NCBI GenBank assembly: GCA_002269645.1
Contig: NIVC01002286.1
Coordinates: 62,001-126,000 of the forward strand
Length of the DNA: 64,000 nucleotides
Reading direction: 5' to 3'
Source: Macrostomum lignano
Taxonomy: Eukaryota
Part shown: positions 7,466-43,644 of the stretch, one piece after another
Numbering within the stretch: position 1 is the stretch's first letter
How the letters are laid out: each line of letters starts with the position of its first letter
Made by a program: the position numbers and the translations under genes
The notes under the pieces: model-generated
The model's input: only the letters and a program-made list of their open reading frames with translations
Database searches by the model: none
Told to the model about the DNA's origin: nothing

Positions 7466-8953
7466 CTAGCGCGAGCCGGCCACGGTCAGCAGGCCGCCGA
7501 GGCACATCAGCGACATCAGTTGCAGAGTCCAGCTGGCCGGGACGGCGGTTGGCCTGGCCGAGTTGCACTCCGGTTCCCGGCAGTGGCAGTATCTCACTTT
7601 AATCTTCTTGGTGCCGACGCGCTCGATGCAGCCCTGGATGTCGTCGTTCACCAGGTTGGTGCACTGGCGACTCACGTAGACCTTGTCGCCAACTGTGAAG
7701 CAAGGATTGGGGAGTGGAAGCTGTAAATGCAGGCTAATATTAGTTGCCAGGTGAATCGATAGAGTCTATGGTGGGTCTATGATGAATTCCTAATGAGTCC
7801 GTGATAAGTCGATGGTGAGTCGATAGTGAGTTGATGGTGAGTCGATAGTGAGTCGATGGTGAGTCAATAGTAAGTCGATGGTGAGTCGATAGTGAGTTGA
7901 TGGTGAGTCAATAGTGAGTTGATGGTGAGTCGATAGTGAGTTGATGGTGAGTCAATAGTGAGTTGATGGTGAGTCGATAGTGAGTTGATGGTGAGTCGAT
8001 AGTGAGTTGATGGTGAGTCAATGGTGAGTTGATGGTGAGTCAATAGGGAGTCCATGAAGAATCGAGGTGTTATCTCTGAGACCCGAGTCACCGATGCGCA
8101 CTCACCGGTCTGCACCATCTTGCGGCAGCCAATCGGCTTGGTGGGGTCAATGCGCGAGTCATTCACGCAGTCAACGCTGTGGCTGAACCGGTCCCAGGTG
8201 GCGCAGTGGTCCTGCCTGGTGTCGTCGCACACAATGCACCGGAAGCTCTTCTTCGGCGTTGTAGTCGGCGCTGGGGTCTCGTCAACGCGGACCTCGGCTT
8301 GGCCGCTGACCAAAGCTGCAGGGGGTGGTTGGAGAGAAATTTTTGTAAGGTGGAAACGCATGTGCTGCCATTGTTATACGATATCGTACCTCCTCTTTTC
8401 TATCTCATCTCACCCTCTCCCTCAGTTTTTTCTTTCTCATCTCATCCTCTCCCTCATCAGTCTTTTCTATCTCATCTCACCCTCTCCCTCATCAGTCTTT
8501 TCTATCTCATCTCACCCTCTCCCTCATCAGTCTTTTCTATCTCATCTCACCCTCTCCCTCACCAGTCTTTTCTATCTCATCTCACCCTCTCCCTCGCCAG
8601 TCTTTTCTATCTCATCTCACCCTCTCCCTCACCAGTCTTTTCTATCTCATCTCACCCTCTCCCTCGCCAGTCTATTCTCTCTCATCTCACCCTCTCCTTC
8701 AGTACTTTGCCTCTGCTCTCATCCTCTCTCTTCTTTCTTTCTCTTCTCAAATTCTCGCTCTTCTCCCGGTCTCTCAAAGCCTTTTCTCCCAAGTCTGCTC
8801 AGAGTCTCAAAGCTACGTAGTGGCAATTGAAATTGCGAATGGCTTGAGATGTGCAGCAGGCTAAATGACAATTCAAATAAGAGCCATAACAATCTCACCG
8901 CAGAGCCAGGCGGAGCAGAAGAGGGCCAGCAGGCAAGCGTATCCGGGCTGCAT
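7466..8953 (-). CDS. Ly6/uPAR three-finger protein, quiver/sleepless-like, secreted and probably GPI-anchored (163 aa)
   Basis: Exons 8953-8899, 8315-8106 and 7692-7466 with GT-AG junctions (phases 1,1), 492 nt in total. Protein: signal peptide MQPGYACLLALFCSAWLCALVSG, then FRCIVCDD..HC..VDC..GCRKMVQTVGDKVYVSRQC..GCIERVGTKKIKVRYCHCREPECNSA, then a hydrophobic C-terminal tail. Confidence 0.88.
7808..8046. repeat. Intronic 12/24-bp minisatellite (gagtcgatagtgagttgatggt)
   Basis: Tandem gagt(c/t)(g/a)at(a/g)gt units in intron 2 of the Ly6 gene. Confidence 0.9.
8393..8700. repeat. Intronic 35-bp CT-rich minisatellite (tcttttctatctcatctcaccctctccctcatcag)
   Basis: About 8 tandem copies in intron 1 of the Ly6 gene. 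Confidence 0.92.
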
Positions 8954-10294: not shown

Positions 10295-12211
10295 ATGGGC
10301 AAGAGAAGCAACGGACCTGCAATCGGCATCGACCTGGGCACCACGTACTCGTGCGTGGGCGTGTTCCAGGCAGGCAAAGTGGAGATCATCGCCAATGACC
10401 AGGGCAACCGAACCACGCCCAGCTACGTGGCCTTCACGGGCACGGAGAGGCTGGTGGGCGACGCGGCAAAGAACCAGGTGGCGATGAACCCGGAGAACAC
10501 GGTGTTCGACGCCAAGCGACTCATCGGGAGGAAGTTCAGCGACGAGACGGTGCAGCGGGACATGAAGCTGTGGCCGTTCAAGGTGGCGAACGACGGTGGG
10601 CGGCCGAAGATTGAGGTTCAGTACATGGGCGAGAGGCGGAGCTTCTACCCGGAGGAGATCTCGGCCATGGTGCTGACCAAGATGAAGGAGACGGCGGAGG
10701 CGTACCTCGGCGAGAAGGTGACTGACGCGGTGATCACGGTGCCGGCCTACTTCAACGACAGCCAGCGGCAAGCGACGAAGGACGCTGGCGCGATCGCCGG
10801 GCTGAATGTGCTGCGGATTGTGAACGAGCCGACGGCGGCTGCCCTGGCCTACGGGCTGGACAAGAGCCTGGACGGCGAGAAGAACATTCTGATCTTCGAC
10901 CTGGGAGGCGGCACATTCGACGTGTCCATCCTGACGGTGTCGGAGGGCAGCATGTTCGAGGTGCGATCGACGGCCGGTGACACTCATTTGGGCGGCGAAG
11001 ACTTTGACAACCGGCTGGTAGAGCACCTGATCCAGGAGTTCAAGTGCAAGTACCGCAAGGACATGAGCGGCAACGCCCGAGCAGTGAGGCGGCTGCGCAC
11101 AGCGGCTGAGCGAGCGAAGCGAACTCTGAGCAGCTCAGCGCAGGCAAGCATCGAGATCGACTCGCTGTTCGAGGGCATCGACTTTTACACCAGCGTGACC
11201 AGGGCTCGGTTCGAGGAGCTGTGCGCTGACCTCTTCCGTCAGACGATGGAGCCGGTGGAGCGAGCGCTGAGGGACGCCAAGATGGACAAGAGCAGCGTCA
11301 GCGAGATTGTTCTGGTCGGCGGATCGACGAGGATCCCGAAGGTGCAGAAGCTGCTGCAGGAGTTCATGGGCGGCCGGACGCTGAACAAGTCGATCAACCC
11401 GGATGAGGCGGTCGCGTACGGAGCCGCGGTGCAGGCGGCGGTGCTGACCGGTGTGAAGGATGAGAAGATCGAAGACCTGCTGCTGCTTGACGTGGCTCCG
11501 CTGTCGCTGGGCATCGAGACTGCCGGCGGCGTGATGACCAAGATCGTGGAGAGGAACAGCCGCATCCCGACCAAGGCGACGCAGACGTTCACCACGTACT
11601 CGGACAACCAGAGCGGCGTCACGGTGCAGGTGTTTGAGGGCGAGCGGGCGCTGACCAGGGACAACCACCTGCTGGGCCGGTTCAACCTGGACGGCATCCC
11701 GCCAGCGCCGCGCGGAGTCCCGCAGATCGAGGTGACCTTCGACGTAGACGCCAACGGAATCCTGGTGGTGTCGGCGAAGGACAAGAGCACCAGCAAGGAG
11801 GAGAAGATCACAATCACGAACGACAAGGGTCGCCTGTCGAAGGACGAGATCGAGCGGATGGTGCGGGACGCGGAGAAGTTCCGCGAGGAGGACGAGCGGC
11901 ACCGCGAGCGCCTGGCGGCCCGCAACCAGCTGGAATCGCTCGCCTTCCAGTACAAGCAGGCGGCCAACGACTGCAAGGACCGGCTGGGCGAGAAGGAGGC
12001 CGGCAAGGTGACCGCCGCTTGTGACCGCGTCATCTCCTGGCTGGAGAACAACCAGACGGCCGACAAGGACGAGATCGCCGAACAGCAGCGGCAGCTGAGC
12101 AGCCTGTGCTCGCCTCTCATGGCCAAGCTGCATCAGCAGCAGCAGTCGCCTCCGCAGGGTCCGCAGCGAGCGGGACGAGCGGGCGGACCCACCGTCGAGG
12201 AGGTTGACTGA
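10295..12211 (+). CDS. hsp70: Cytosolic stress-inducible Hsp70 (638 aa, intronless)
   Basis: [57 protein letters not shown] and a C-terminal PTVEEVD. No introns; HSE plus TATA promoter; AATAAA at 12424-12429. Confidence 0.99.
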
Positions 12212-14801: not shown

Positions 14802-17800
14802 ATGGTCATATGTAATGGTGGTGGAACCCTACAAAAACATATCATTGGGAAAAACATTTCAGCTCTGAAGCAATGCCTTATAAAAGGTAACATTTGCATT
14901 CTGTTCAAAGTTACATAATACCATGTGAAATTATTGATGTGCTTATTTGTTTACTTTTAGGCCTGCACCCGAATGCAGAAAATGAGAATGGAGAAACGGC
15001 ACTGTTTGTTGCATCCTACTATGGACATGAGGACATTGTTGACCTATTGCTATGTAGTGGAGCTAAGCCTAACCTGTAAGCTATAGTCAACTCTGAAGCT
15101 ATTATGTTTTTAAATCTGCTTGTGAAGTGAAATACAATGTCAGATGAAGTATGTTGGGATAGAAAAAGTTGAAAAAAGGATAGCAAAAGGATATTCATCA
15201 TCATCAGGTCCCTAAGCCATTATGGCCGTTGGTGCGCCCATTTCTCGACAGCGACTCCACCTCCTTCGATCCAAGACCGTCTTGCTCAGCTGCATAATCC
15301 TCTCTCCACTCTACTTGATTGCCTGTCCAGTCACCTTGTGCCTCTGCAGCGACTCCACCTCCTTCGATCCAAGACCGTCTTGCTCAGCTGCATAATCCTC
15401 TCTCCACTCTACTTGATTGCCTGTCCAGTCACCTTGTGCCTCTGCAGCGACTCCACCTCCTTCGATCCAAGACCGTCTTGCTCAGCTGCATAATCCTCTC
15501 TCCACTCTACTTGATTGCCTGTCCAGTCACCTTGTGCCTCTGCCCCTTCGTCCCTCAACATCACCTTGAACCACAGCCTTCAGCACCCCATCACTTGCAA
15601 CATTCCCGAAGAAACGGAGTCTTCTTATCCTTCCAGGAAATGCCCAGCATCCTTCTGTAGATCTTCATCTCGAAAGCTCTCGTAATTTTCATCTTTCTTC
15701 TCCATTATCCAGCTCTCTCTGGCATAGAGAAGAGTTGCCATGACTACCAATCTCATCGGCAGCATTTTACTTTCCATTTGGGTGTTTTTTGCTCTCCAGA
15801 TGTTGTCCAATTTCTCTAGCGCAATTTTAGCTCTTCCTATCCGTATCCAAATCTCCATGTTCTCCATGTTTTCAGCTAAAAGTTGAAACTGCAGCTGAGA
15901 AGTTCGCTAAAATTAAAAATGGAGCTGCTTAATAAAACCATTGGTTGTAGAGGTGGAGCTGCTGATACGAGACAGGCTGAGAGTCCAGAGCCGGCTGGAG
16001 CTGCTGATACTAGACAGGCTGAGAGATACGCTGGGCACTGTACATTGCACCCCTCTCCCCTGCAGCCAATCAGAAGCCGAGAGAGCCAACTGTGGCCAGT
16101 CAGTCAGATATTGAGCCTAAAGGCCCATGCCCATGGAAAATTTCAGGCCCCTGCAGTCAGTCAGTTAAAATCATCATTTGCGCGCTTAATCCCGTCAGTA
16201 CAAAAGCAGCTGCGCGATTGTTCCAAGTCATGGGAAAACTCGTGCGCGATTTTTCCTGTATCGATCAAAAATACTGCGCGCTTATTCCGGTCTGTGGAAA
16301 GTTAACTGCGCGCTTATTCAGGTTTTGGTCCGTTCTCCTGCGCGCTTATTCCGAACCATGTAAAATATGTGCGAAAATGCGCGCTTGTTCCTGGCGCGCT
16401 TAATCTAGCTACCCTCTAACACAGGATATCAGGGAGAATTTAATTTTTTTAACGTAATTTTTGTACATGCAATGCCTTCTAATTCAAATAATTCAAAAGT
16501 CCGAACAAGCAGGGCAACACGCCGTTGCACGCGGCAGCCAGCCGCGGCCACCACCGAGTGATGAGTCGCCTGATCTCCTCCGGCGCCGACCTCAGCCTGG
16601 TCAACTCCGACGGCAAACGGGTCGCCGATGTCGCTCGCGGCAGACGGGCGATCGATATTGTTGAAAGGAAATGGGCCACCTTCCAGCGGCTCATCAACTG
16701 CGGCCATCTGCGGCCCGGCCGCGAGCACTGGCCTCCCGGCGTGATGGACACCGGCTTCGGGCCCGTGGTCATCGCCGACGGCTCGCCGGCCCTGCTGCAC
16801 GGCCTGCCAATCGTCAATGCAGCCACCGACGAGCTGCGGGACGACCCAGCGCTGGTCCGGTCCTACAGGTGCGGGGCCTTCACTGAGATTGTCAGGTAGG
16901 TTGGCCAACTTGACACTCTGAGCTGCTTGTACCGCGTGTATCAACGGTGTGAGAGTACAGTGTTGGCTTGCATGTTCGATTGCTTTTTGTGAGGCTCACA
17001 AGTGCGTACAACTCGCTGCACATCACCTTCTCGGTGTTCACGGTCTCTTGATTGATCGCCCTGTGCCAAGTGGCACCATCGTGAATAGTGAATGCTAAGA
17101 AATAATCATTAACCGTATCCTCCAGTAAAATGTTACTGTGTCAAGAATCGCTAAAGAGTCATTGCAAACACATTTGTAGTGACTCTATCTAGTCTAATTC
17201 GGCTCTTGTGACTTTTAACAACTCAAAACGATTGTAATGCGACAGAGAGGCGACTGTTGAGTCACGAGCGCATCACGTGAGTCGTAGAATATTAAGAGTC
17301 GCAAGTCGTCCGTTGTTAAACGGGGGTGGAAAGCCAGGGGCTTACCGCGGATCAGCCCGAAAGGGGGCTCTACCGCAGGGATCTGAAAGGGCCATACTGC
17401 CAGGGGCATGTAGCCCGAGAGGCCACAATTGGGACCAGAGCTCAGGACTCTGGTGAGAGCCTAGTGAATTGGTGCTACTAGCCCAAACCTACGGTACAAG
17501 ACACCGCCAACCCAAAAAGTGGAATCAGGGACGGTGCTAGGACCGAGTCCACCCAGGCCACCACCCAGCAGACAAGTCCTTGGGAGTGCGCAGAAAAAAA
17601 TGGAATTAGCGAAAAAAGCTTGGGTTACTACTAAAAGCGGTCCGAGAGCGGGGAAACCCCGAGGTCTACGGAAATGTCTTAATTATTGGAGCGAGTCTGG
17701 AAGGCTTGTTTCCGATGGCGAGACTCCAGGCAGGAAACACAACTACCGGCTACAAACCCAAGGGTATCGCCTATCCAGCTCAATATTGGACGCCAGGCCA

Positions 17801-20800
17801 AGGGGTCGGGAAGGGGCACAATGAGCAAGAGGACCCGGACTCAGCCGGTATCCCCGAATCGGGCGAACTCATTCCCCAGGACACCAATCCACTGTCAGGA
17901 TGAGAGCCAGCGACACTTAGGCAGGGAGACAACCAGAGGAGCCAGCAGATGGACCAAGGACAGCGCAGGATGGACCGGGCAGGGAGGGCAGAGCGGAAAT
18001 CTAAGGCCTTACATTAATAAAACCAGTTCAGTAATGGGGATAAAAACAGGACGGAGGAGCACCTGAACCCTACTAGCAGGTGGAGGGACCCTGCTTCCCG
18101 GGGCTCAGCCTCAGGGCTGGCATCAACTGGGCTCTACCGTACACCTTCGTGAATGGTCATTCTTTCCTGCAGGGCGGGTACGACCGGGGGGCTCAAGTCC
18201 CGTTCTAGCCACACTGCAGTCCAGAGTACACACTCACCCCAGGTACACCCCCCTAAACCAAGGCCGAGGGCCAAATAATTGGAATGCACGAAAAAGAATG
18301 GTTGGGGTTATTTTTAGAATGGGCACAGCTCCTCCGGGGTGGACCCTTAGAAATTGGGCTAGCCGAAGCCAGGCCAATCGGATTGCGCACAACCCTTAGA
18401 CAAGCTACCAGAGAGGCAGCCAGGGTAAAAACAGTCAGAGACCGTCTTTACGGCAAAATGCAATTCTTTAGACAAATCTGTGTAGGGCTTGTCTCGAAAG
18501 TGCTTTAAAACGCAAAATTTAACGTCAAATTTAAATTATTATTTACTACTTAATTCAAAATTCAGTCAGTAGTATCAATAGATCATCAGTATTATTCCCC
18601 TTAATTGTCTATTCTTCAATCGGTAAAATTTACCATCATAACAGCATGACCTGGCGCAGCTCCGCGGTGTCCGTGCGCCAGCTCAACCGTCACTACGTTA
18701 CCAAGGCAACTGGTGCTTACGTGAAGTGTCTTGTGCTCAATCAGGCTGTCTGGGAGGTGACCGCGGCCAGCTCGCTACGGCATCCCGCCATCCTCACCAT
18801 GATGGCAGTGAGCGTCGACACACACTCTGTTCACGCTTACCCCATTATCACGCCTGTGAGTCTTTGTTCCTTTTATTTTATGGTAAACTTGGTAAGATTG
18901 TAGAGTTGTGAGACTGATAATTGTCACTTTCCATTGTCAGATAGTTCACATTTAGGCCTGTTGGCTTTGTTAGACTGTTCGCATCGTCAGACTGTTTACA
19001 TTTTCAGGCTGCTCACATTGTCGGTCTATTCACATTGTCATACTGCTCACATTGTCATACTGCTCACATTGTCATACTGCTCACATTGTCAGACTGTTCA
19101 CATTGTCAGACTATTCACATTGTCAGGCTATTCACATTGTCATACTGCTCACATTGTCAGACTGTTCACATTGTCATACTGCTCACATTTTCAGACTGTT
19201 CACATTGTCATACTGCTCACATTTTCAGACTGTTCACATTGTCATACTGCTCACATTTTCAGACTGTTCACATTGTCATACTGCTCACATTTTCAGACTA
19301 TTCACATTGTCATACTGCTCACATTGTCAGACTGTTTATACAAACTGAATGCCAATGTCAGCAACTGTCAGACACTCCTATCCCAACTCCCAATCCTGGC
19401 GCCTCAGATATTCGAGCGAGTTGGCCTGGGCTCGCTGTTCCACCACCTGCACGTGCGCCACCAGCCTCTCAACGATGCGACCCGGTACGCCTACCTGCGC
19501 CAGATTGGCGAGGCCCTCGCCTTCCTGCACTCGCGTGGCGTTGTCCACACAGCGCTCAGCTCACACGCTGTGCACCTGGTGTCGCCCAGCCTGGCCAAGC
19601 TCGGCTGCCTGGAATACGCCGTCTGCACAGCCGACACCGGGCCGAGGTGCTCCTACGCCTCGCTGAATGATTGCTACCGGGCCGTGGCCAACTGGCTGGC
19701 TCCGGAGCTGCTCAACCGGCTGCCAGCCACGGCCGCTGCCGACGTCTACGGGCTGGGCGTTGTGGCCTGGGAGATGTGGACTGCCCAGGTAAGGATTTGC
19801 TGGTGTACTAGATTAGCTTTTGAATGCTTTTGTTTCAATTTGGCAATCCTGAACTTCAAAATGGCTCTTAAAATTTCCTCCTTTGCAGGTGCCGCACGAG
19901 ACCGCCCAATCGGCAGCCGACATTCGGCGTCGTCTCAGTCAGCGCAGCTCGGACTGGCTGAGCCGCTGGCGCGATCGCCGCCTGCCGGAGTCGCTGCAGC
20001 AGCTGGTGCTGTCGGCCGTGCTGCCGGAGCCGCACAGGAGGCCCCCGTTGGACACTGTCTGCCGATTGCTGGTCTACGGCTACTGGGGAGCGCAGCGCGA
20101 CGGCGACGATCGATTTGGTGACAATCTGGCGCGTCGGGTTCGACGAAGTTCGCCAGCTGCTTGCGCTGCTGCGGCCGCTGAAGGTGAGCAATCTGGTTGC
20201 GAGTGAGGAGCCAAGTGATTTGTTATTTTGCACTGCTGCAAACCAACAGTGCCAACAGTGGACTCGAGTAGACTAAATAGAGTCGAACTGCGATTCTAAC
20301 TAACTCATTGTCGCGTCGTTTAAGAGTTCACCTGAATAGCACGATGATTTGGTAGAATCAACGATGTCTCAGTTTCGATATATTATTCATAAACGATGCT
20401 AACAGAAACGATGCACAATATATAATATTAACGCATTGGAGTGGCGGGGCATACGGGCGCGAAATGGGGTGGTGGGCACACAAGATGTACAGTCAATAAT
20501 TCAATAGTCATTTAGTTAGTCATTCAGTTACAAGTGCAGCGGCAGACTCCAGCGCTGCCTCATTCATAAAGCGACGCATGTGCACTTTAGATTCTAGACT
20601 CTACGGCCCCCGAGTCATTATAGATCGAAGCGCTCCAGGGTCACTTGCGTTGCCTCAGAGTTGCAAACAATAAAACGCCTCAAATTGACTCTTAGGCGAC
20701 TAACGACTTTTTGGCGACTTTTATCATGACTCGTCGTTTAAGGGTCGTCTAGAGTCACTTCTTTCTGATTTTACCTGTGTTACCTGCAATAACTCTGGGA

Positions 20801-23800
20801 CGCTTCTTAGCCTAGTTGCCGGTTTCATCGGTAAGCACCGACAGCTCAGAAGCAATTTTCTAATTTCCTTTTTTATGTTTCCATTTCAAAGATATTTTCA
20901 TTTGATCTAGAACAAAATCGATAGCTTTGATATTAGAATGTAGAGAAATCGCACATGGTTTCCAATTAAACTCCATCCGGACACAAAACAAAAATATACA
21001 TGCTAAACTGGATAAGAGTGCATAAGCAGTCACGTGACCTCTATTTTAAAGTAGCCGCCTTTTCACCTGACTTAAAATGATCCCTCATGACCTTTGACCT
21101 TTGCCCGATCGACCCCACCGCAGCATCAACATCGGCAGGCGCTCGCAGTCACCGACAGCGCAGTAACAGCCGGTCACAGCGGCGGCAGCAGCCTAATCGA
21201 GTCTCGCAGGACCTGACTAACGTCTCTAGCTTGGCCACCGAGATTCTGATGGCCTCCGACAATGAGGATGAACAATCTGACGAAAGCGACGGGGAAGCGG
21301 CTGGAGCAGCAGCCGCGTCGCCTCATGGCCGGCAGCGGCATCACCTTAGCCGGCGCGACTACTTGGAACTGGCGGCCGTACCGCCTCCCGACAGGCGCAG
21401 CTGGTCGCCGGGCGGGCGGTCCCGGTCTCCTAGCAACGGCAACTGGGCCGGCCGGCGCGGCTGCCGCCGGCGTCACCACAGCTGCTCCAGCGCCTCGGCT
21501 GTCGGCGACGGCGCCGGGTTCAAGCCGGCCGGCCACCGGACCAGCTTCGATCCGCCCTGTGCCGAGAGGTGCTCCGAGTCGCCGGACCTGATCCGGGCGG
21601 CCAGCAGCGGCGGCTTCTCCAGCGTTGCAGCCGACTGCAGGCGGCGACGTCAGCCCAGGGCCGCCTCCGCAGACAGCGGCCGGCCGCCGTTGCCGCCGAC
21701 TGCCAGGACCATCGTAAGTTGGAGACGTCTAAGCTTTCGATGTATTCAATTTGTGACCTGTGGTGTGCGCTAATTTCTACGGCTGCTCATAATGTACATG
21801 TAGACCGGCTGCTCACACATGTAGACCGGCTGCTCACACATGTAGACCGGCTGCTCAGTCATGTAGACCGGCTGCTCAGTCATGTAGACCGGCTGCTCAT
21901 ACATGTAGACCGGCTGCTCATACATGTAGACCGGCTGCTCACACATGTAGACCGGCTGCTCACACGTGTAGACCGGCTGCTCACACATGTAGACCGGCTG
22001 CTCAGTCATGTAGACCGGCTGCTCATACATGTAGACCGGCTGCTCATACATGTAGACCGGCTGCTCATACATGTGGACCGGCTGCTCACACATGTAGACC
22101 GGCTGCTCATACATGTAGACCGGCTGCTCAGTCATGTAGACCGGCTGCTCATACATGTAGACCGGCTGCTCATACATGTGGACCGGCTGCTCATACATGT
22201 GGACCGGCTGCTCACACATGTAGACCGGCTGCTCACACATGCAGATCAGCGGCACAAAAGACTGGCTGCTCCTCTTTCGCTGGCCTCATCTGGGGGAGAA
22301 AACAGATGGAGGCCAACCTAGCATGGACGACACGCAAACTCGGGTTGGGGAAGTATTAAAACAGGATCCAATGAGACAGCCTTAAGTAACATATAAGTCC
22401 ATGGTAACTCCAAATACATGTCAAGTAGAATATGCGTACATTATTATTCCCAACTTGAGCATTCTCTTATTTATATTCTCCCAGACGGCGCAGCGAACCC
22501 TTTGCCGCAGCAGGCCCAGCTTCTCCGCGTCGGCCTCGCCGCTCTGTCAACCGGCTTATTAACCAATTCGAGCACATCGCCGACTCCGGTCACGTCAGCG
22601 CCGCCTCCTCCGTGGCCGCCACTGCCGGAGTCTTGGACAGCACGCCGGTGAAGGCCAGGCCCGGGGACCCGGTGCCGACCACCTGCCGGGTGTTGCTGCC
22701 CAACTCGCAGTCGGCTCGGCGGGCGCTCAATCTTGGTGAGAGACTTGGCGGTAGATTGCTGTTGATTCACAGGTGTACTGCTGTTGATTGACAGGTGTAC
22801 TGCTGTTGATTCACAGGTGTACTGCTGTTGATTGACAGGTGTACTGCTGTTGATTGACAGGCATACTGCTGTTGATTGACAGGTATATTGTTGTTAATTA
22901 ACAGGTATATTGCTGTTGATTGACAGATATATTGCTGTTAATTACATATTGCTGTTGATTGACAGGTATATTGCTGTTGATTGACAGGTGTATTGCTGTT
23001 GATTGACAGGTGTATTGCTGTTGATTGAGAGGTGATCTTGCTGGTGATTGACAGGTATATTGCTGTTGATTGACAGGTATATTTTCGTTGATTAGCAGGA
23101 TATTGCTGGTAATTGACAGGTATTCTGCTGTTGAAAAGAATAGGAACACGTCTTGCTGTTGATGGACATGCAGTTTAGTTGAAGGCATCCGTATTATTCA
23201 TAAATATTTCCCCAACTTTCGCACCGCAGACGGTCGCGGCAACCGGCCAACAGCTGTTGACGCCGAGCTGGTGTCCCCCAGCGCAGACAGCCGGGGTGGC
23301 CACCAGTGGCAGCCGACTGACTCAGTTCGGGAGCAGCTCAACACCGCTTTCATAGCCAGCAGCACCAGCAGCTGCACCGGCAGCAGCAGCGAGAGTCAGC
23401 AACGGCAGCAGAGAACCGCACCGGCTATGCTTCACCCCTTGGAGAACGGCCTGTACCGCATGGTGTTTCTGCAGCCTCCGATAGAGTCCCAGCATCATCA
23501 TGAGCACCATCCTCATCACCATCATCACAGTCAGCACCAGCAGCCGCAGCGGCACGTCGCTTTTCTTCGCCAACCCCAGCCGACGTCGAACACGAAATCG
23601 CCTACTCCGCCGATTTCTCCGGTCGTCGAATCTTCGCCGATCGCATTCGGGCAGGCCAGGCGCTCCTGGCTGGCGGCGGAGACTCGCCGGGAGGCTCGCC
23701 AGGTGCAAGAACGCGAATGGGAGGCGGCCAGGTGGCGTAACAGGCGCAGCGCGCTCGGCGACAGCGGCGTCGGCCTGTCGGAGGTCGAGCCGACAATGTC

Positions 23801-25826
23801 GGAAGCTTGCGAAATGCCGATATCTCAGCAGCAGCGGCAGGCTGATTCAGTGCCCGTGCCAGTTGTCAAACGCAAAGGCTTCGGCAGCAGCGGCTCGGCG
23901 AGCAATTCAATCCAGCCGCAGGATCAGGGAAGCTGGGACTCGCATGTTGAGCAGCGTCATCAGGGATTCGGTTTCGCGACATCATCAATAGGTCGAACTG
24001 AAGACGCACCAGTTCCAGTGCAAGTTAAGCTGAAAGGATTGCTCAGCAACTCTGTTCAGGTGCAGCAGGAAGAGCAGCAGTGCGGCGGAAGCTGGGACTC
24101 GCCTGTCGAGCAGCGTCATCAAGGATTTGGCTCAGCGAGATCCTCAGCAGTTGAACAGCGGGAAGCACCTGTTCCAGTGCGCATGAAACAGAAAGGATTC
24201 TTCAGCAACTCATCGGTTCAGATGGAGCAGAATGGAGGAAGCTGGGACTCACCAGTTGAGAAGCGCCATCAGGGATTTGGATCCGCAGCCTCCTCAGCTG
24301 GTGAGCAGCAGCAGGGCTGCACCGAAGAAGTGGCAGTCCCGGTGCAAGTGAAACGAAAAGGGTTCTCCAGCAACTCGGTCCAGGTGCAGCAAGGAGAGCA
24401 GCAGCAGCAGGATGAAGAGGAGGGCCGTGGAAGCTGGGAATCGCCAGCCGAGAAGCACCTGTCCGCCTCGGCCGGTCTGCAGGTGAAGCGAAAAGGGTTC
24501 GGCAATAACATGTCGTCAGCGTCAGCTGGCAACATCGATCAGCAGCGAGATGTCGTCTGGGCGCCGGTGCCCGTGTCGCAGTCGACTGACGAAACTGCGA
24601 CAACAGTCTCCAAGCGTCGGAGATTTGGAAATTCGGGACAGCAGCGACAGCAGCAGCCGCGTCGGAAAGGCTTCGGCTTCGGCAGCAGCCAGCCGCAGAC
24701 GGTTCAACAGGAACAGGATGAGAACTGCGGCGAGCATCAGATTGATCAGCAATCCGCTGACGGTCACTCCAGCGGAGGTTGGAAGCTCCAGAGAGGCTTT
24801 GGCTTTAACAACCGATTGCCTGACGATGTAGAGATACCTGTGCAGCAGACCCAGCAAGCAGATGAAGACAACTGGGAGACACCCGAGCCGCAGAAGCAAC
24901 CAACCGCCGAATGCTGGGAGTCGGCAGTTCCCGTCACAGTGCACAGTACTGCTGACGCTCAGGTGACAGCACCAGTGAGCCAGACTGCTCAGGTGGGATT
25001 CGGAAACTCCGCTAGCAACCAGGCTCAGGTGGGATTCGGCAACTCCGCTACCACCCAGGCCCAGGTGGGATTCGGCAACTCCGCTAGCAACCAGGCTCAG
25101 GTGGGATTCGGCAGCTCCGCTAACACCCAGGCTCAGGTGGGATTCGGCAACTCAAACACTCAGGCTCAGGTGGAATTCGGCAACTCAAACACCCAGGCTC
25201 AGGTGGGATTCGGCAACTCCGCTAGCAACCAGGCTCAGGTGGGATTCGGCAACTCCGCTAGCAACCAGGCTCAGGTGGGATTCGGCAACTTAAACACCCA
25301 GGCTCAGATGGGATTCGGCAACTCTGCTAACACCCAGGCTCAGGTGGGATTCGGCAACTCAAACACCCAGGCTCAGGTGGGATTCGGCAACTCTGCTAAT
25401 ACCCAGGCTCAGGTGGGATTCGGCAACTCAAACACCCAGGCTCAGGTGGGATTCGGCAACTCAAACACCCAGGCTCAGGTGGGATTCGGCAACTCAAACA
25501 CCCAGGCTCAGGTGGGATTCGGCAACTCAAACACCCAGGCTCAGGTGGGATTCGGCAGCGATGTCGTAACCGACTGCGAGGATCCCATAGAAACGGATTC
25601 GATTAACGAAGTCTCACAGCAGCCGCAGCAGCAGCAGTTTAGCGATTGGTCCGAGCTCGAGGCCTCGCATTTCTGGCCAGACGACTCCGATGGCGACATC
25701 GCCGAATCGCCGAGTGCCGAGCGTCGCGGCTGGCTAGCCGCCTTCACTGACCGGGTGAGCGGCCTGCTCAGGAGAAGCGTCGGCTACTCAGACAGCGCCA
25801 CCTCTGCCGACTGGGTGCGAAATTGA
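14802..25826 (+). CDS. TEX14: Ankyrin-repeat plus inactive protein-kinase domain protein, TEX14-like, with a long low-complexity C-terminus
   Basis: Phase-consistent GT-AG exons: 14802-14886, 14961-15075, 16500-16895, 18645-18855, 19408-19788, 19889-20183, 21124-21713, (junction unresolved), 22485-22735, 23230-25826. Ankyrin repeats NGETALFVASYYGHEDIVDLLL and GNTPLHAAASRGHHRVMSRLISSGAD. Kinase-like segments MTWRSSAVSVRQL, LRHPAILTMMAV, IFERVGLGSLFHHLH, HTALSSHAVHLVSPSLAKLGCLEY, NWLAPE, ADVYGLG parallel the degenerate motifs I recall from vertebrate TEX14 ([35 protein letters not shown]). Orthology not tested. Confidence 0.75.
15197..15870 (-). mobile_element. 5'-truncated RTE-type non-LTR retrotransposon 3' fragment in intron 2 of the TEX14-like gene
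   Basis: Minus-strand EIWIRIGRAKIALEKLDNIWRAK..KMLPMRLVVMATLLYARESW matches the post-RT region of RTE/CR1-like LINEs. (CAT)n tail on plus at 15197-15206. A ~103-bp segment is triplicated (about 15247-15545). Confidence 0.75.
17140..17330 (+). repeat. Dispersed repeat, fragment A (shared with 27635-27750)
   Basis: agagtcattgcaaaca..gtgactct..aatgcgacagagaggcgactgttgagtcacgag(c/a)gcatcacgtgagt occurs at both loci. Confidence 0.8.
19017..19335. repeat. Intronic 17-bp minisatellite (cacattgtcatactgct / cacattgtcagactgtt)
   Basis: About 18 tandem copies; explains the SHCHTAHI-type ORFs. Confidence 0.93.
20570..20835 (+). repeat. Dispersed repeat, fragment B (shared with 27770-27990)
   Basis: ctacggcccc.gagtcat..aaaacgcctcaaattg.ctctta..cgactttt..tttacctgtgttacctgcaa..ctgggacgcttctt.gcctag occurs at both loci. 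Confidence 0.8.
21793..22243. repeat. Intronic 21-bp minisatellite (catgtagaccggctgctcaca/ta)
   Basis: About 21 copies; source of the HVDRLLT and MYEQPVY 7-residue repeat ORFs. Confidence 0.95.
22765..23135. repeat. Intronic ~22-bp minisatellite (gctgttgattgacaggtgtact)
   Basis: Tandem copies decaying toward the 3' end. Confidence 0.9.
24980..25556 (+). repeat. Coding tandem repeat (AQVGFGNS[A]NTQ, 33/36 bp) in the last exon of the TEX14-like gene
   Basis: About 17 copies of caggctcaggtgggattcggcaactc; all length variants preserve the frame. Confidence 0.9.
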
Positions 25827-26384: not shown

Positions 26385-27086
26385 GAGATGACAGTTCAGG
26401 AGATGTGTCAGATGTGTCAGGAGATGACAGTTCAGGAGATGTGTCAGATGTGTCAGGAGATGACAGTTCAGGAGATGTGTCAGGAGATGACAGTTCAGAA
26501 GATGTGTCAGAAGATGACAGTTCAGCAGATGACAGTTCAGGAGATGTGTCAGGAGATGACAGTTCAAGAGATGTGTCAGGAGATGACAGTTCAGGAGATG
26601 TGTCAGGAGATGACAGTTTAAGAGATGTGTCAGGTGATGACAGTTCAGGAGATGTGTCAGGAGATGACAGTTCAGGAGATGTGTCAGGAGATGTGTCAGA
26701 AGATGACAGTTCAGGAGATAACAGTTCAGGAGACGTGTCAGGAGATGACAGTTCAGGAGATGTGTCAGGAGATGACAGTTCAGGAGACGTGTCAGGAGAT
26801 GACAGTTCAGGAGAATTGTCAGGAGATGACAGTTCAGGAGATGTGTCAGGAGATGACAGTTCAGGAGATGTGTCAGGAGATGACAGTTCAGGAGATGTGT
26901 CAGGAGATGACAGTTCAGGAGATGTGTCAGGAGATGACAGTTCAGGAGATGTGTCAGGAGATGACAGTTCAGGAGATGTGTCAGGAGATGACAGTTCAGG
27001 AGATGTGTCAGGAGATGACAGTTCAGGAGATGTGTCAGGAGATAACAGTTCAGGAGATGTGTCAGGAGATGACAGTTCAGGAGATG
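26385..27086. repeat. 27-bp minisatellite GGAGATGACAGTTCAGGAGATGTGTCA
   Basis: About 25 copies with 12/15-bp subunit shuffling. Confidence 0.95.
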
Positions 27087-27634
27087 TGTGCTCAGGTACC
27101 TAGTTATTCATTCGATTGAAGTTCAGGTGATGAGGATTTATGTTTCGGGTGATGAGGATTTTTAGCTTTCAGTTTCTTTTTTGAGCGTAAACCAGCGCAT
27201 GGTGTCTCCTGCCAGCTTGTCTTGCTTTCACATTAATATGCTTTTCTTCATCATTTAGAAAGGGTCCATTCTATTACTTTCATCGTCTTCCACATTTTCC
27301 TGTCCATTTAATTTTGCTTTTATTAAAACTTTTTTACTAGGGTAATGAATCTTAGAACGCCAGCCATTTCAATGTTTATCGAGTTTGCGTCCTACAAAAA
27401 GTAGGTGAAATTCAGTCCAAATTTTGTGCCCATTTTTACCATTTTGAATTGTGCCGAAAAATTGCTTGCATTTCTTTGTCTGTTGTGCTTTTCTGTTTTT
27501 TTTTTCGTTTTTTCCCAATAAAAAGTATGTTTGTTGCGATGTGGAGGTCCAAGTTTTTCGTTTCGTTTTAATTGACTTTAAATCAGGTTTTCTGTTATTC
27601 AATTTTCAACAAACCATCGTTGAAAACGTTATCG

Positions 27635-27990: not shown

Positions 27991-28223
27991 CGTGGTCTGA
28001 TCGCCTACTGATAAGTATTGCCAGAGAAGAATGTAAAGTGAATCTCTTTAAGTTACTCCACGCAAAGTGAACGACCTCTCCTTTAACGTTCGCTGTCAAG
28101 CATATACACTCAGCAACATTTAAAACGCAACACTCTAACTAGTGAATGAAGACGCTGTCGTCTTCAAAGGTGGGACGATGGTTTATATATTGTGTTTTTA
28201 TCCTTTTATGGCTATGACATATG

Positions 28224-29865
28224 CCCCTGGCATTAGTTAGTCTAGTGGTCTAGTGGGGGCTGGCCGCCCCCACGCCCCTGGCATTAGTTAGTCTAGTGGT
28301 ATAGTGGGGGGCTGGCCGCCCCCACGCCCCTGGCATTAGTTAGTCTAGTGGTATAGTGGGGGCTCGCCGCCCCCCACGCCCCTGGCATTAGTTAGTCTAG
28401 TGGTATAGTGGGGGGCTGGCCGCCCCCCACGCCCCTGGCATTAGTTAGTCTAGTGGTATAGTGGGGGGCTGGCCGCCCCCCACGCCCCTGGCATTAGTTA
28501 GTCTAGTGGTATAGTGGGGGCTGGCCGCCCCCACGCCCCTGGCATTAGTTAGTCTAGTGGTATAGTGGGGGCTGGCCGCCCCCCACGCCCCTGGCATTAG
28601 TTAGTCTAGTGGTGTAGTGGGGGCTGGCCGCCCCCACGCCCCTGGCATTAGTTAGTCTAGTGGTATAGTGGGGGGCTGGCCGCCCCCCACGCCCCTGGCA
28701 TTAGTTAGTCTAGTGGTATAGTGGGGGGCTGGCCGCCCCCCACGCCCCTGGCATTAGTTAGTCTAGTGGTATAGTGGGGGGCTGGCCGCCCCCCACGCCC
28801 CTGGCATTAGTTAGTCTAGTGGTATAGTGGGGGGCTGGCCGCCCCCACGCCCCTGGCATTAGTTAGTCTAGTGGTATAGTGGGGGCTGGCCGCCCCCACG
28901 CCCCTGGCATTAGTTAGTCTAGTGGTATAGTGGGGGGCTGGCCGCCCCCCACGCTCCTGGCATTAGTTAGTCTAGTGGTATAGTGGGGGGCTGGCCGCCC
29001 CCACGCCCCTGGCATTAGTTAGTCTAGTGGTATAGTGGGGGGCTGGCCGCCCCCCACGCCCCTGGCATTAGTTAGTCTAGTGGTATAGTGGGGGCTGGCC
29101 GCCCCCACGCCCCTGGCATTAGTTAGTCTAGTGGTATAGTGGGGGGCTAGCCGCCCCCCACGCCCCTGGCATTAGTTCTTCTAGTGGTACGCTCGTATAG
29201 TGGGGGGGCTTGCCGCCCCCCACGCCCCTGGCATTAGTTAGTCTAGTGGTATAGTGGGGGGCTGGCCGCCCCCACGCCCCTGGCATTAGTTAGTCTAGTG
29301 GTGTAGTGGGGGCTGGCCGCCCCCCACGCCCCTGGCATTAGTTAGTCTAGTGGTATAGTGGGGGGCTGGCCGCCCCCTACGCCCCTGGCATTAGTTAGTC
29401 TAGTGGTATAGTGGGGGCTGGCCGCCCCCACGCCCCTGGCATTAGTTAGTCTAGTGGTACGCTCGTATAGTGGGGGGCTGGCCGCCCCCCACGCCCCTGG
29501 CATTAGTTAGTCTAGTGGTATAGTGGGGGGCTGGCCGCCCCCCACGCCCCTGGCATTAGTTAGTCTAGTGGTATAGTGGGGGGCTGGCCGCCCCCCACGC
29601 CCCTGGCATTAGTTAGTCTTGTGGTATAGTAGGGGGCTAGCCGCCCCCCACGCCCCTGGCATTAGTTTTTCTAGTGGTATAGTGGGGGCTGGCCGCCCCC
29701 ACGCCCCTGGCATTAGTTAGTCTAGTGGTATAGTGGTATAGTGGGGGCTAGCCGCCCCCACGCCCCTGGCATTAGTTAGTCTAGTGGTATAGTGGGGGGC
29801 TGGCCGCCCCCCACGCCCCTGGCATTAGTTTTTCTAGTGGTATAGTGGGGGGCTGGCCGCCCCCA
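28224..29865. repeat. 51-53 bp hairpin satellite inside unit 1
   Basis: About 30 copies of ctggcattagttagtctagtggtatagtggggggctggccgccccccacgccc; each has a GTGGGGGGC/GCCCCCCAC stem. Confidence 0.95.
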
Positions 29866-30263
29866 CACCCCCGCTCCCCCACCCCTCCCGCGCGTTGTTG
29901 TTGGGAGGGTGGTTGTTGTTGTGGGGTTTGCGTAACGTGGGGGCTGCCGCCCCCACACCCCGCTCCCCCACCCCACCCCTCCGCAACTCTTCTCACCTCT
30001 AACACATCTTTTTAGCATGCTAAAACTGCTTGTAAGCCTTTGGCGACCGCGCAACACATGATACTTGCCGATATGTATCGTAATATTTTTTCTGCACTAA
30101 CAAATCATCTGTGCCGCACTTTCAGCTTCACTCTTACTCTTTAATAAGGTATAGAAGGAAATGAAAATTAAACAATCAATATTAAATTATATTCAAGTGA
30201 AAGAGAATTGAAAATACTAATAAATCCGTTCCTGCTAAAAAAATTAAATTTAAAAAAAAAACT

Positions 30264-30336
30264 TGGCCCACTTGGGATTCGAACCCGTGTTTAGGCCATT
30301 TACAAAGCAACTGCCTTCGGCCCCGATCCATCTCTT
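30264..30336 (-). ncRNA. tRNA-like pseudogene module inside unit 1 (also about 34266-34337, 37590-37662, 40511-40582, 44788-44858)
   Basis: B-box GGGTTCGAATCCC on the minus strand. Unit 3 has A-box TGGCTTAGTGG. No convincing full cloverleaf. Confidence 0.55.
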
Positions 30337-31807
30337 GCTTAAGCGAAGCTCTACAGTGCACGCCCTTTATATCGAATATTCCCTATGGTAGCCACTTTTA
30401 CGATTTTTGCTGCTTTTTCATACATTTCTGCTCGCTGCATCGCAGCGCCTTCATCTAAAAATGCGAGTTGCATGTCGTTACAGAGATAACATCAAGGCGC
30501 ATTCATCTAATGCATTTTTAAAGTATGTCAACAAATTTTACGCCTCCTAGGCGCCAAATTGTGCATTTTCACCTGTTCTGACAGGTATTCAAACAGGTAT
30601 TAAGACCTATTAACTTAAGAATCAGTTTTCAAAACTAATTTAGTTGCACAGTGCATCCATAGTGCTGTTTTTAGACACCAAAATTGAGTCTCTAGGCCTT
30701 GCCAATGCAGAGTTATTAGCAAAAGTATGCTCAAAATTTGCCCAAAAATAGCCTTCTAAAAATTCGGAGCCAATTTTCTCAAAAATACGAATTTTCCAGC
30801 CATATTGGCGTATGACCGGTGTAACTTTAGCTATTCGACTAAACAATATTGAAAATGCAGAAAAATCGGTGCGCAAAAATTCTTATTTTTCGACTTCAAA
30901 GTTTGTACCCCGAATGGGCCGTTTTTCACTTAACAGGTAAAAAGTACCTGTTAACAGAGGTTTTTTCAGGAGTGTTTTATGTCATTCAAAAGGGCATCCG
31001 ATAGGCTACAATTTGACGCCATACTCGAAAAACTTTGCCCCATTTTAAAAAAATTTCCTTAACAACGTCTGATTTTCTGCAGTGCCCCCCGGCCTCTTTT
31101 TTCCCTGGTTTCCGGGTCACTGCTCAGCACAGGTAGGTCCAAATGCTTAGAAAATTTAGGAAAACAAATTTCCATATGTTTGACACGTCGTGTTAAAGTC
31201 TCAACACTGTAGCATAAAACACTTTTTCAAGTTTGAGGACTACTTTTTTAAAACGTGACCCAATTTTTCGAAAATGTCGTTTTTAGGCACTCTTTGGCAC
31301 CTGGGCAGGTTATTGATGGCCCAATCGGCCAAATCTCGATGTTTCCGATTAAAAGACATCCATTTGAGTTATTTGGTATACAAAACAGCAAAAATAAAGT
31401 TTTCCATCTCGACGCCATAGGCCTCACAAAAGTGCACTAAAAATTTGTACTTTTAAACAGCAGATAGGCAGCCATGTGAAAAGTACATTTTAGCCCTAAA
31501 AACTATAGCGCATCAAACAGCCCCAGGTGTTATTGACGCTATGAGGCAGCTCAAAGGCCGCGCTGTCGCGCGTCCTTTTCGCTGCGGTGAGGCAAAGTTG
31601 AAAAAAATGCCGATTTTTCGACCTCAGAAAACACGTTTTTTGCACTTTTACCCTAAAAGTTAAAGTACAATCAAAAAATCCATTTCTGATCATTGTAGCG
31701 TTTGAATGCCCGCGTTTACTGAGCCCACTCGCTAAGCGCTGCCATATTCTCAATCCTTATTTTTTGAGATCAAAGTTTTTGACAAAGTCGAAAAAACGCA
31801 GTTTTTG

Positions 31808-31843
31808 GTTGCCATGGCAACCAAAACGCGTTGCCATAGCAAC
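31808..31843. promoter_or_regulatory. Paired RFX X-box-like motifs carried by the element (present in all five units)
   Basis: GTTGCCATGGCAAC (31808-31821) and GTTGCCATAGCAAC (31830-31843). Function in this context is untested. Confidence 0.5.
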
Positions 31844-32163
31844 CAACTATTGTGCATCCGATAGCGCTAGGTCTTTGACACATTTTGGCAAAAACTGTTT
31901 GTAAATCGGTTGTACCGTTTTTTATTGGCAGCGTTTAAAAGTTGAAAAACGTCATTTTTAGTGTGTGCAACCACGTTACATCTTATCAGGGACGATTTCG
32001 CAAAAGTAAGCAGTATAGAAAAAAATTCTCGCTTCGCTCGCATTTTTTTCTATACTACTTACTGGCTCATCGTCCCACAACTAGTGAATGAAGACGCTGT
32101 CGTCTTCAAAGGTGGGACGATGGGTATATATTGTGTTTTTATCCTTTTATGGCTATGACATAT

Positions 32164-33775
32164 GCCCCTGGCATTAGTTAGTCTAGTGGTCTAGTGGGGG
32201 GCTGGCCGCCCCCACGCCCCTGGCATTAGTTAGTCTAGTGGTATAGTGGGGGCTGGCCGCCCCCCACGCCCCTGGCATTAGTTAGTCTAGTGGTATAGTG
32301 GGGGCTGGCCGCCCCCCACGCTCCTGGCATTAGTTAGTCTAGTGGTATAGTGGGGGGCTGGCCGCCACCCACGCCCCTGGCATTAGTTAGTCTAGTGGTA
32401 TAGTGGGGGGCTTGCCGCCCCCCACGCCCCTGGCATTAGTTAGTCTAGTGGTATAGTGGGGGGCTGGCCGCCCCCCACGCCCCTGGCATTAGTTTTTCTA
32501 GTGGTACGCTAGTATAGTGGGGGGCTTGCCGCCCCCCACGCCCCTGGCATTAGTTAGTCTAGTGGTATAGTGGGGGGGGGGGCTGGCCGCCCCCCACGCC
32601 CCTGGCATTAGTTAGTCTAGTGGTATAGTGGGGGGCTAGCCGCCCCCCACGCCCCCGGGCATTAGTTAGTCTAGTGGTATAGTGGGGGGCTGGCCGCCCC
32701 CCACGCCCCTGGCATTAGTTAGTCTAGTGGTATAGTGGGGGGCTTGCCGCCCCCCACGCCCCTGGCATTAGTTAGTCTAGTGGTATAGTGGGGGGCTGGC
32801 CGCCCCCCACGCCCCTGGCATTAGTTAGTCTAGTGGTATAGTGGGGGGCTAGCCGCCCCCACGCCCCTGGCATTAGTTCTTCTAGTGGTACGCTCGTATA
32901 GTGGGGGGGCTTGCCGCCCCCCACGCCCCTGGCATTAGTTAGTCTAGTGGTATAGTGGGGGCTGGCCGCCCCCCACGCCCCTGGCATTAGTTAGTCTAGT
33001 GGTGTAGTGGGGGCTGGCCAACCCCCACGCCCCTGGCATTAGTTAGTCTAGTGGTAGCGTGGGGGGCTTGCCGCCCCCCACGCCCCTGGCATTAGTTAGT
33101 CTAGTGGTATAGTGGGGGGCTGGCCGCCCCCCACGCCCCTGGCATTAGTTAGTCTAGTGGTATAGTGGGGGGCTGGCCGCCCCCCACGCCCCTGGCATTA
33201 GTTAGTCTAGTGGTATAGTGGGGGCTTGCTGCCCCCACGCCCCTGGCATTAGTTAGTCTAGTGGTATAGTGGGGGCTTGCCGCCCCCCACGCCCCTGGCA
33301 TTAGTTAGTCTAGTGGTATAGTGGGGGGCTGGCCGCCCCCCACGCCCCTGGCATTAGTTTTTCTAGTGGTACGCTCGTATAGTAGGGGGCTGGCCGCCCC
33401 CCACGCCCCTGGCATTAGTTTTTCTAGTGGTACACTCGTATAGTGGGGGGCTTGCCGCCCCCCACGCCCCTGGCATTAGTTAGTCTAGTGGTATAGTGGG
33501 GGCTGGCCGCCCCCACGCCCCTGGCATTAGTTAGTCTAGTGGTATAGTGGGGGGCTAGCCGCCCCCACGCCCCTGGCATTAGTTAGTCTAGTGGTATAGT
33601 GGGGGGCTGGCCGCCCCCCACGCCCCTGGCATTAGTTAGTCTAGTGGTATAGTGGGGGGCTGGCCGCCCCCACACCCCTGGCATTAGTTTGTCTAGTGGT
33701 ATAGTGGGGAGTTGGCCGCCCCCACGCCCCTGGCATTAGTTTGTCTAGTGGTATAGTGGAAGGCTGGCCGCCCCC
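32164..33775. repeat. 51-53 bp hairpin satellite inside unit 2
   Basis: Same unit as 28224-29865, about 30 copies. Confidence 0.95.
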
Positions 33776-36884: not shown

Positions 36885-37295
36885 TAGTAAGGGTTGTTAA
36901 GGGCGTTGTTGTTGTTGTTGGGGTTGTTGTTGTTGTTCTTGGGGTTGTTGTTGTTGTTGTTGGGTTGTTGTTGATGGGGTTGCTGTTGTTGTTGGGGTTG
37001 TTGTGTTGTTGTTGGGTTGTTGTTGTTGTTGTTGGGGTTGTTGTTGTTGATGGGGTTGTTGTTGTTGTTGGGGTTGTTTTTGTTGTTGGGTAGGGGTTGC
37101 GTAATGTGGGGGGCCGCTGCCCCCCACACCCCCCGCTCCCCCACCCCTCCCCGCGTGTTGTTGGGTAGGGGTTGCGTAATGTGGGGGGCCGCTGCCCCCC
37201 ACACCCCCCGCTCCCCACCCCTCCCCGCGTGTTGTTGGGTAGGGGTTGCGTAATGTGGGGGCTGCTGCCCCCCACACCCCCGCTCCCCCCCTTCC
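36885..37295. repeat. (GTT)n/G-run microsatellite plus ~65-bp GC hairpin repeats inside unit 3
   Basis: gttgttgttgggg tract followed by 3 copies of ggttgcgtaatgtgggggg(cc)gctgcccccacacccccgctcccc. Confidence 0.9.
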
Positions 37296-43200: not shown

Positions 43201-43644
43201 CTCATCGTCCCACAACTAGTGAATGAAGACGCTGTCGTCTTCAAAGGTGGGACGATGGTTTATATTGGCTTATTATCTTTTATGGCTTAAATTAAATTAA
43301 AAAACAACTAAGAAGCTTCAAGTTGATTATAATTTAATTTAAACAAACTTTAAGCAAAACTGTTTAAAAAAATTAATAAAAATACTTATGATGGTTTATT
43401 ATGTCCATTATTGTTTATGGCTATGACCTATTTATTTAACCCAAATTAAGAACTAATTAAAACGCTATATCGTGTTTTTATATTTTACGGCTATGACGTA
43501 TGAAGTACTAAGAAGCTTAATGGGCTACATTTTCAATTTGATTTAAACAAAGTTTATACATAACTGTAGAAATATAATAATAAAAAATATTTTATTAGAT
43601 TAAAAGAATATCCACTCTGCTGTTGTGTAGAAAGGGTTGTTAAG

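Follow-up and report, generated by a model that had tools for sequence, protein, structure and literature searches.

Gene structure and the degenerate kinase fold

A 64-kb stretch of the genome of the flatworm Macrostomum lignano (contig NIVC01002286.1 of assembly GCA_002269645.1, positions 62,001 to 126,000, forward strand), hereafter the window and the reference for all coordinates, carries a gene encoding ankyrin repeats followed by a degenerate protein kinase fold. The gene is attributed here to the TEX14/NKF5 family, known in mammals for its role at germ-cell intercellular bridges. Its 5′ part comprises six exons on the plus strand. Exon 1 (14802-14886) contains the ATG and the beginning of ankyrin repeat 1, exon 2 (14961-15075) ankyrin repeat 2, and exon 3 (16500-16895) ankyrin repeat 3 with a capping helix, the linker and a degenerate glycine loop (G-loop). 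The pseudokinase continues through exon 4 (18645-18855), with the N-lobe strand beta3 and helix alphaC, and exon 5 (19408-19788), with the FERVGLGSLF hinge and the motifs HTALSSHAV, GCLEYA and NWLAPE, to exon 6 (19889-20183), where the end of the C-lobe is followed by the beginning of a low-complexity tail. All six exons have AG acceptor and GT donor sites, and the spliced frame is open over 494 codons. The product matches at 100% the NCBI entry ‘hypothetical protein BOX15_Mlig007134g1, partial’ (Mlig007134.g1) of M. lignano. The NCBI coding sequence (CDS) is 5′-partial and begins at 14799 in the same frame as exon 1; a polypyrimidine/AG acceptor at 14781, 20 nt 5′ of exon 1, might serve spliced-leader trans-splicing or close an intron lying further upstream. 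An earlier note on this DNA, made from the letters alone, had placed the gene at 14802-20183. This span holds the six exons, but the gene does not stop there, as the annotated CDS runs on through 21124-21713 and 22485-22562.

Ankyrin repeats followed by a kinase fold, the order proposed in that note, are borne out by PDB matches and by a structural model. The ankyrin block covers approximately residues 8-125, and the best PDB stretches cover residues 16-122. The AlphaFold2 (AF2) model of the protein (predicted local distance difference test, pLDDT, 82.4; predicted template modelling score, pTM, 0.68) consists of an ankyrin stack and a kinase fold, with three to four helix-pair ankyrin repeats (paired helices at residues 9-111) and residues 186-469 in the protein kinase fold.

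The degenerate motifs described in the note are all found in the translation at the places given there. The G-loop has a single glycine (YRCGAFTEIV, aa 189-198, 16864-16893), VSVR replaces VAIK in beta3, with a Lys to Arg change (aa 207-210, 18667-18678), HTA replaces HRD (aa 316-318, 19546-19554) and CLE replaces DFG (aa 336-338, 19606-19614). In a wider context, HTALSSHAV stands in the place of HRDLKxxN (19546-19572) and CLE lies within GCLEYA (19603-19620). Substitutions thus affect the catalytic Asp, the catalytic Asn and the Asp of DFG, while the C-lobe core is kept. Also retained are the APE motif, as NWLAPE (19693-19707), and the invariant Glu of alphaC, within VWEVTAA (18748-18768). 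Judged by these residues, the kinase fold is incapable of phosphotransfer catalysis. Ahead of it, the linker carries the family motif GFGPVV...LPIV (16753-16770, exon 3). The linker segment GFGPVVIADGSPALLHGLPIVNAATDEL aligns with GFGxVY...IPx[VI]xE..L of molluscs, a hemichordate and vertebrates, with G152 and G154 near-invariant.

Family membership and age of the family

To find relatives, the kinase part was compared by HMMER, on its own and exhaustively, with 1.84 billion representative proteins. A word-indexed search was dominated by ankyrin proteins when the whole 494 aa served as query and returned mostly GC-biased bacterial kinases for the kinase part alone; with the family alignment as query, it yielded at least two relatives. 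In the HMMER search, some matches with several stretches ranked higher, but these are multi-kinase proteins (e.g. of Mastigamoeba) whose totals sum several domains. The top single-domain matches after the protein itself reach E-values of 1e-32 to 1e-16, with 32-40% identity and 95-128 bits (best mollusc relative, E = 3.6e-32). They are ANK-pseudokinase proteins 1000-1700 aa long, with the domain at roughly residues 230-480. These matches cover molluscs (Gigantopelta, XP_041364567; Haliotis, Liolophura, Mytilus and Pomacea) and other lophotrochozoans (the nemertean Tubulanus and the annelid Capitella). Crustaceans are well represented (Palaemon ‘TEX14-like’, Armadillidium ‘TEX14’, Amphibalanus ‘TEX14’, Artemia ‘TEX14-like’, Pollicipes, Lepeophtheirus and Notodromas), as are other arthropods (the centipede Strigamia and the tick Ornithodoros, ‘TEX14-like’). 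Deuterostomes contribute the hemichordate Glandiceps (‘TEX14-like’) and the TEX14 proteins of hagfish, lamprey, shark and gar. In a regular-expression scan of the fetched proteins (top matches and cluster members), ∼70 of them had the motifs HxxLSSHAV, AKLGx[LF]E[YF], NWxAPE and FERVxLGSLY in common. The inactivating motifs are a property of the entire TEX14/NKF5 family, M. lignano included.

Two further lines of evidence point the same way. A reciprocal hidden Markov model (HMM), built only from four vertebrate TEX14 sequences (one each of gar and shark, two of lamprey), gives 157 bits for the M. lignano protein (profile positions 9-296 of 325) and at most 81 bits for non-family kinases, namely the strongest other matches of the global search. 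Neighbour-joining (NJ) trees of ∼250 columns unite the family, with M. lignano in it, as a single clade in 100/100 and 40/40 bootstraps. The TEX14-like reading of the earlier note is thereby supported by the names of the top matches, by the profile scores and by monophyly. The reciprocal comparison and kinase phylogeny that it had called for place the protein with named TEX14 sequences, in trees whose outgroups are the best non-family matches of the global search and not named members of ILK or RIPK.

The likeness to TEX14 might nevertheless be a product of convergent decay in another ankyrin-kinase family, be it ILK, RIPK4/ANKK1, TNNI3K or some TKL kinase of a single lineage in which activity was lost independently. 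ILK has N-terminal ankyrin repeats and then a catalytically dead kinase, and so combines the two parts in the same order as the M. lignano protein. RIPK4 and ANKK1 have an active kinase N-terminal of the ankyrin repeats; this order is the reverse of that in M. lignano, whose degenerate kinase follows the ankyrin repeats. Some observations favour such a descent. The ENA protein P0002 joins ANK repeats to an active kinase and shares 25% identity with 91% of the query, and TKL kinases lead the PDB sequence matches. These solved structures (BRAF and CTR1) score only 47 bits, against 95-128 bits for members of the TEX14 family and 157 bits for the vertebrate profile, and P0002 falls outside the family clade in the NJ trees. 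Neither ILK nor RIPK is among the best 60 PDB sequence matches, and ILK is not among the best 50 fold matches. Fold search by Foldseek returned generic TK/TKL kinases only and was dropped as a family discriminator. The degenerate motifs agree with those of the family at each position (HxxLSSHAV, AKLGx[LF]E, NWxAPE and FERVxLGSLY), as does the linker motif, an agreement not to be expected of independent decay. Convergent decay is disfavoured, and origin in another family is considered very improbable.

Membership in the TEX14/NKF5 family does not amount to one-to-one orthology. Vertebrates possess a second group of shorter TEX14-like proteins (P0105, P0107, P0113, P0118, P0143, P0197 and P0209), characterized by LYNWLPPE and by different C-termini. 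In the NJ tree, this is the sister group of gnathostome TEX14, within vertebrates, which suggests that it arose by a vertebrate-specific duplication. Since vertebrates carry this later duplication, the M. lignano gene would be a pro-orthologue of both TEX14 and its paralogue. Of the orthology raised in the note, family membership holds and a strict one-to-one relationship does not.

A relative was met in an 8-kb contig, L002 (ENA ERZ21788738 ctg40706l), which encodes at 66-638 a kinase C-lobe (P0045) that is 42% identical and has the same HTA/GCLE substitutions. The contig probably derives from another macrostomid-like flatworm. It has the kinase C-lobe alone in common with the M. lignano locus, and its downstream open reading frames (ORFs) are without similarity to the M. 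lignano tail.

Since invertebrate proteins, that of M. lignano included, group with TEX14, an origin of the family before vertebrates is supported. The spread of its members over protostomes and deuterostomes shows that the family and its dead-kinase state date at least to the bilaterian ancestor, the catalytic residues having been lost before bilaterians diverged. A 2026 review of male germline bridges traces TEX14 and CEP55 to vertebrates only (PMC13216642); as far as TEX14 is concerned, the family survey, a comparison of protein sequences, contradicts this view. Many invertebrate proteins already bear the name TEX14 or TEX14-like at NCBI. Moreover, the kinome paper on Schistosoma haematobium classifies Sh_Smp_131630.1 as Other/NKF5 (PANTHER PTHR23060), names it Tex14 and reports male-specific transcription. 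Its S. mansoni orthologue akkn (Smp_131630), an ‘ankyrin repeat-containing protein kinase’, is expressed in testis and listed among germline-specific genes. The sequence of Sh_Smp_131630.1, taken from the supplement of the kinome paper, matches the family profile with an hhalign probability of 99.6% (E 1e-23) and the M. lignano protein with a BLASTP E-value of 7e-15. Schistosomes thus already provide a published TEX14/NKF5 gene of flatworms that acts in the germline, and the M. lignano gene adds a further member. The older origin suggested in the note is upheld by the invertebrate members, but its novelty is not, given Smp_131630 and the NCBI names. The old origin is visible already in databases and kinome papers, yet absent from the review of the bridge field.

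The 3′ end of the gene and its surroundings

The annotated CDS was reproduced exactly: it encodes 716 aa and ends at TAA 22560-22562. Its last two exons are exon 7 (21124-21713, plus strand), which encodes a Ser/Arg/Ala-rich low-complexity tail, and exon 8 (22485-22735, plus strand), in which the annotated frame meets the stop. Codon-usage scoring in exon 8 favours another frame, starting at 22486, over the annotated one. This frame lacks Met and runs without a stop as far as a GTGAGA donor after 22735, whose phase suits an acceptor at 23229. Beyond this acceptor lies a candidate exon 9 (23230-25826, plus strand), an open frame of ∼865 aa closed by TGA 25824-25826, which is probably the C-terminal tail of the TEX14-like gene, as judged from frame and phase. 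Over window positions 21592-22735, exon 7, which is in phase 0 at 21713, conflicts with the coding-like frame of exon 8, and linking the two takes either a +1 shift or a weak donor at 21568. With this donor, an open protein of 1591 aa results, a size typical of the family. The conflict may be due to a 1-nt insertion or deletion (indel) in the assembly, to use of the weak donor or to a real truncation. As the Mlig_3_7 annotation is genome-guided, an assembly indel would pass into the annotated CDS.

Two other accounts of this region were set aside. A separate trans-spliced gene made of the ORF 23230-25826 is unlikely, since the preceding coding-compatible exon frame is without Met. An alternative, ab initio M. 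lignano gene model of 1532 aa (P0084) includes candidate exon 9 and has frame differences in the region of exons 7-9; it is distrusted, as it translates intronic minisatellite sequence, skips beta4-beta5 and has no gene record.

The candidate tail contains, at 24987-25557, a coding 33-bp tandem repeat of 16.6 copies (90% matches) with the 11-aa unit AQVGFGNSxNTQ. On its 5′ side stand about eight looser repeats of the type ‘(A)PVPVxVKRKGFG’ (KRKGFG-type). The composition of this tail is FG-repeat-like.

The tails of relatives are of another kind. In protostome members (P0090, P0091, P0099, P0100, P0106, P0121, P0125, P0163 and others), a short, strongly conserved motif, [VI]KPASH, occurs 250-450 residues past the pseudokinase, and most protostome and hemichordate TEX14-like tails further share WFGGKGSVxNL, EEFYFDD and a C-terminal HTxTDL box. 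No description of these four motifs was met in the literature searched. Regular expressions and block HMMs gave no six-frame match to any of them in the window better than E 0.1. Therefore, the M. lignano tail is either strongly diverged or mis-modelled.

These features could also mean that the gene is a true family member but a truncated or decaying copy, in which the frameshift between exons 7 and 8 stops the protein at 716 aa, with loss of the ancestral tail. The stop at TAA 22560, the need for a +1 shift to reach a coding-like exon 8 frame without Met, and the lack of all conserved protostome tail motifs are what such decay would leave behind. Gene duplication in M. lignano, where 66,777 transcriptional units reduce to 33,715 non-redundant ones according to the literature, would provide a background for it. 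On the other side, the first 494 aa show no damage: splice sites are canonical, and every family-invariant residue is in place. The 42%-identical P0045 keeps HTA/GCLE, as would be expected if the N-terminal module is under purifying selection. The frame conflict may equally well be explained by an assembly error of 1 nt, the sequence being GC-rich, or by the weak donor at 21568 (1591 aa), and P0084, as a second gene model, also differs in frame there. Truncation is judged unlikely, although less so than descent from another kinase family.

The introns of the gene are rich in repeats. Intron 2 has, within 15249-15867, three perfect copies of a 98-bp unit, beside which an 80-aa ORF on the minus strand (15625-15867) has the look of a retroelement remnant and no NCBIfam match. 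Minisatellites lie in intron 4 (at 18932-19336; 17/34-bp unit, 24 copies), intron 7 (at 21795-22245; 21-bp unit, 21.5 copies) and intron 8 (at 22750-23134; 22-bp unit, 17.7 copies). Upstream by 2.6 kb, the plus strand carries an intronless Hsp70 gene of 638 aa at 10295-12211 (DnaK family, E 1e-238), which is not among the NCBI-called genes of that stretch. On the minus strand, at about 7466-8953, an NCBI-called gene of 163 aa has a Pfam match to QVR (quiver/sleepless, Ly6-like). Just downstream of the TEX14-like gene, a satellite with a 27-bp unit in 25 copies spans 26410-27089. It is followed by a GC-rich satellite with a 53-bp unit (31 copies at 28223-29892; second array at 32164-33891). The latter alternates with a ∼2.2-kb unit, a dispersed or tandem repeat present in at least five copies of 87-97% identity (29848-32085, 33851-36088, 37231-39461, 40102-43287 and 44390-46608). 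A further satellite at 51698-53935 (30-bp unit, 74 copies) accounts for the extreme strand skew at 52-54 kb. Rfam has no match in the 64-kb window.

Germ-cell bridges and comparison with known systems

In mammals, TEX14 acts at bridges by docking on CEP55 through GPPX3Y. The absence of this motif from the predicted exons, remarked on in the earlier note, extends to all six frames of the entire window, and the looser form [AG]PPx2-3Y is missing from the plus strand between 12 and 40 kb. In vertebrate members, a motif A[VI][GA]PPxx(x)Y lies ∼250-450 residues past the kinase. Strict GPPX3Y is found in only a subset of them (gar has GPPSHY and lamprey APPRHY) and in none of the invertebrate members inspected. 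A CEP55-docking abscission block in its mammalian form is consequently not supported for the M. lignano protein, where, because GPPX3Y is absent, this mechanism would be inapplicable. It is tempting to imagine that vertebrate GPPX3Y was remodelled from protostome [VI]KPASH, as a comparison of gar AVGPPSHY and lamprey AVAPPRHY with VKPASH might suggest. A common origin is only a guess, since MAFFT does not co-align protostome KPASH (column 1316) with the vertebrate GPP motif (column 1430).

By analogy with mouse TEX14 at midbodies and bridges and with schistosome akkn, the ANK-pseudokinase protein would be a non-enzymatic scaffold in M. lignano germ cells. It might bind partners via the ANK-pseudokinase module and the disordered tail, and bridge stabilization, if any, would proceed via contacts other than GPPX3Y-CEP55. 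Taken further, invertebrate TEX14 proteins would hold germ-cell bridges open without CEP55 docking, vertebrate GPPX3Y would be a late add-on possibly derived from KPASH, and M. lignano would be an extreme case lacking even KPASH, with targeting via the ANK-pseudokinase or the GFG-repeat tail. This extended scenario is highly tentative and, as a whole, improbable.

A more serious competitor holds that the M. lignano protein is a family member devoid of a bridge-stabilizing role. It would be a mitotic or kinetochore scaffold or a regulator of differentiation, and a bridge role that blocks CEP55 would be a vertebrate innovation. This fits the restriction of GPPX3Y to vertebrates, with only [GA]PPxxY in gar and lamprey, and the tracing of CEP55 itself to vertebrates only (PMC13216642). 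A kinetochore role of human TEX14 is reported, as cited in the S. haematobium kinome paper. Likewise, the RNA interference (RNAi) phenotype of akkn is described as blocked differentiation. However, germ-cell bridges occur in Platyhelminthes and in most animal phyla (PMC13216642), which the spread of the family parallels, and a bridge role by other contacts is compatible with all data. The chances of this alternative are put at somewhat less than even. It concerns the function of the protein and leaves its place in the family untouched.

Several points have to be set against the interpretation of the locus as a TEX14/NKF5 pro-orthologue with a germ-cell scaffold function. Both the protostome tail motifs and GPPX3Y are absent from the locus, and the annotated CDS of 716 aa is below most relatives (∼1000-1700 aa in the family). 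The trees are of the NJ type, with outgroups drawn from the global search in the place of named ILK, RIPK4, ANKK1 and TNNI3K, and the M. lignano branch in them is long and basal within the family clade. A search of papers and of the supplements of the M. lignano transcriptome and genome papers found no expression, localization or knock-down data for the gene; its germline and bridge roles are for this reason inferred from relatives. Even in schistosomes, what knock-down of akkn brings about is blocked differentiation of germ cells in juvenile testes, absent in adults, rather than a demonstrated loss of bridges. With these points considered, the probability that the locus is the M. lignano pro-orthologue in the TEX14/NKF5 family, presumably acting as a germ-cell scaffold, is put at roughly 90%.

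The gain is incremental with respect to the published schistosome gene. The comparison nevertheless delineates the ankyrin-linker-pseudokinase module as the conserved core of the family, with the CEP55-docking GPPX3Y confined to part of the vertebrates. It also renders testable the question of whether bridge stabilization is ancestral to the family or a vertebrate innovation. M. lignano, transparent and amenable to RNAi and transgenesis, is a tractable model for this family.

Among known systems, ILK and RIPK4/ANKK1 resemble the M. lignano protein in having ankyrin repeats and a kinase fold, but are without the family and linker motifs. Vertebrate TEX14 shares the layout of three ankyrin repeats, linker and pseudokinase, followed in it by a long disordered tail, for which the M. 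lignano gene has a candidate low-complexity counterpart. It also shares HxxLSSHAV, AKLxx[LF]E, the one-Gly loop, the conserved alphaC Glu and APE, and the GFGxV...IPxV linker, with 28-31% identity over 325 aa. In contrast to it, the M. lignano protein lacks GPPX3Y and [GA]PPxxY, has two small N-lobe inserts and a tail unrelated in sequence, with GFG-type repeats in its candidate part, and has Arg for the beta3 Lys, as do lamprey and some crustaceans.

Schistosome akkn/Tex14 belongs to the same phylum and family and has a comparable core (VHCGVTPHAI...KLGNFEY). It differs by long inserts in its activation segment and by an identity of only ∼27% in the alignable core, and the germline expression and RNAi phenotype belong to the schistosome gene. 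The protostome and hemichordate TEX14-like proteins (Gigantopelta, Haliotis, Tubulanus, Palaemon and Glandiceps, among others) mostly have the tail motifs [VI]KPASH, WFGGKGSVxNL, EEFYFDD and HTxTDL, unlike any frame of the window. They are the best matches overall, with the same N-terminal layout, up to 39-40% identity and E-values of 1e-32 to 1e-20.

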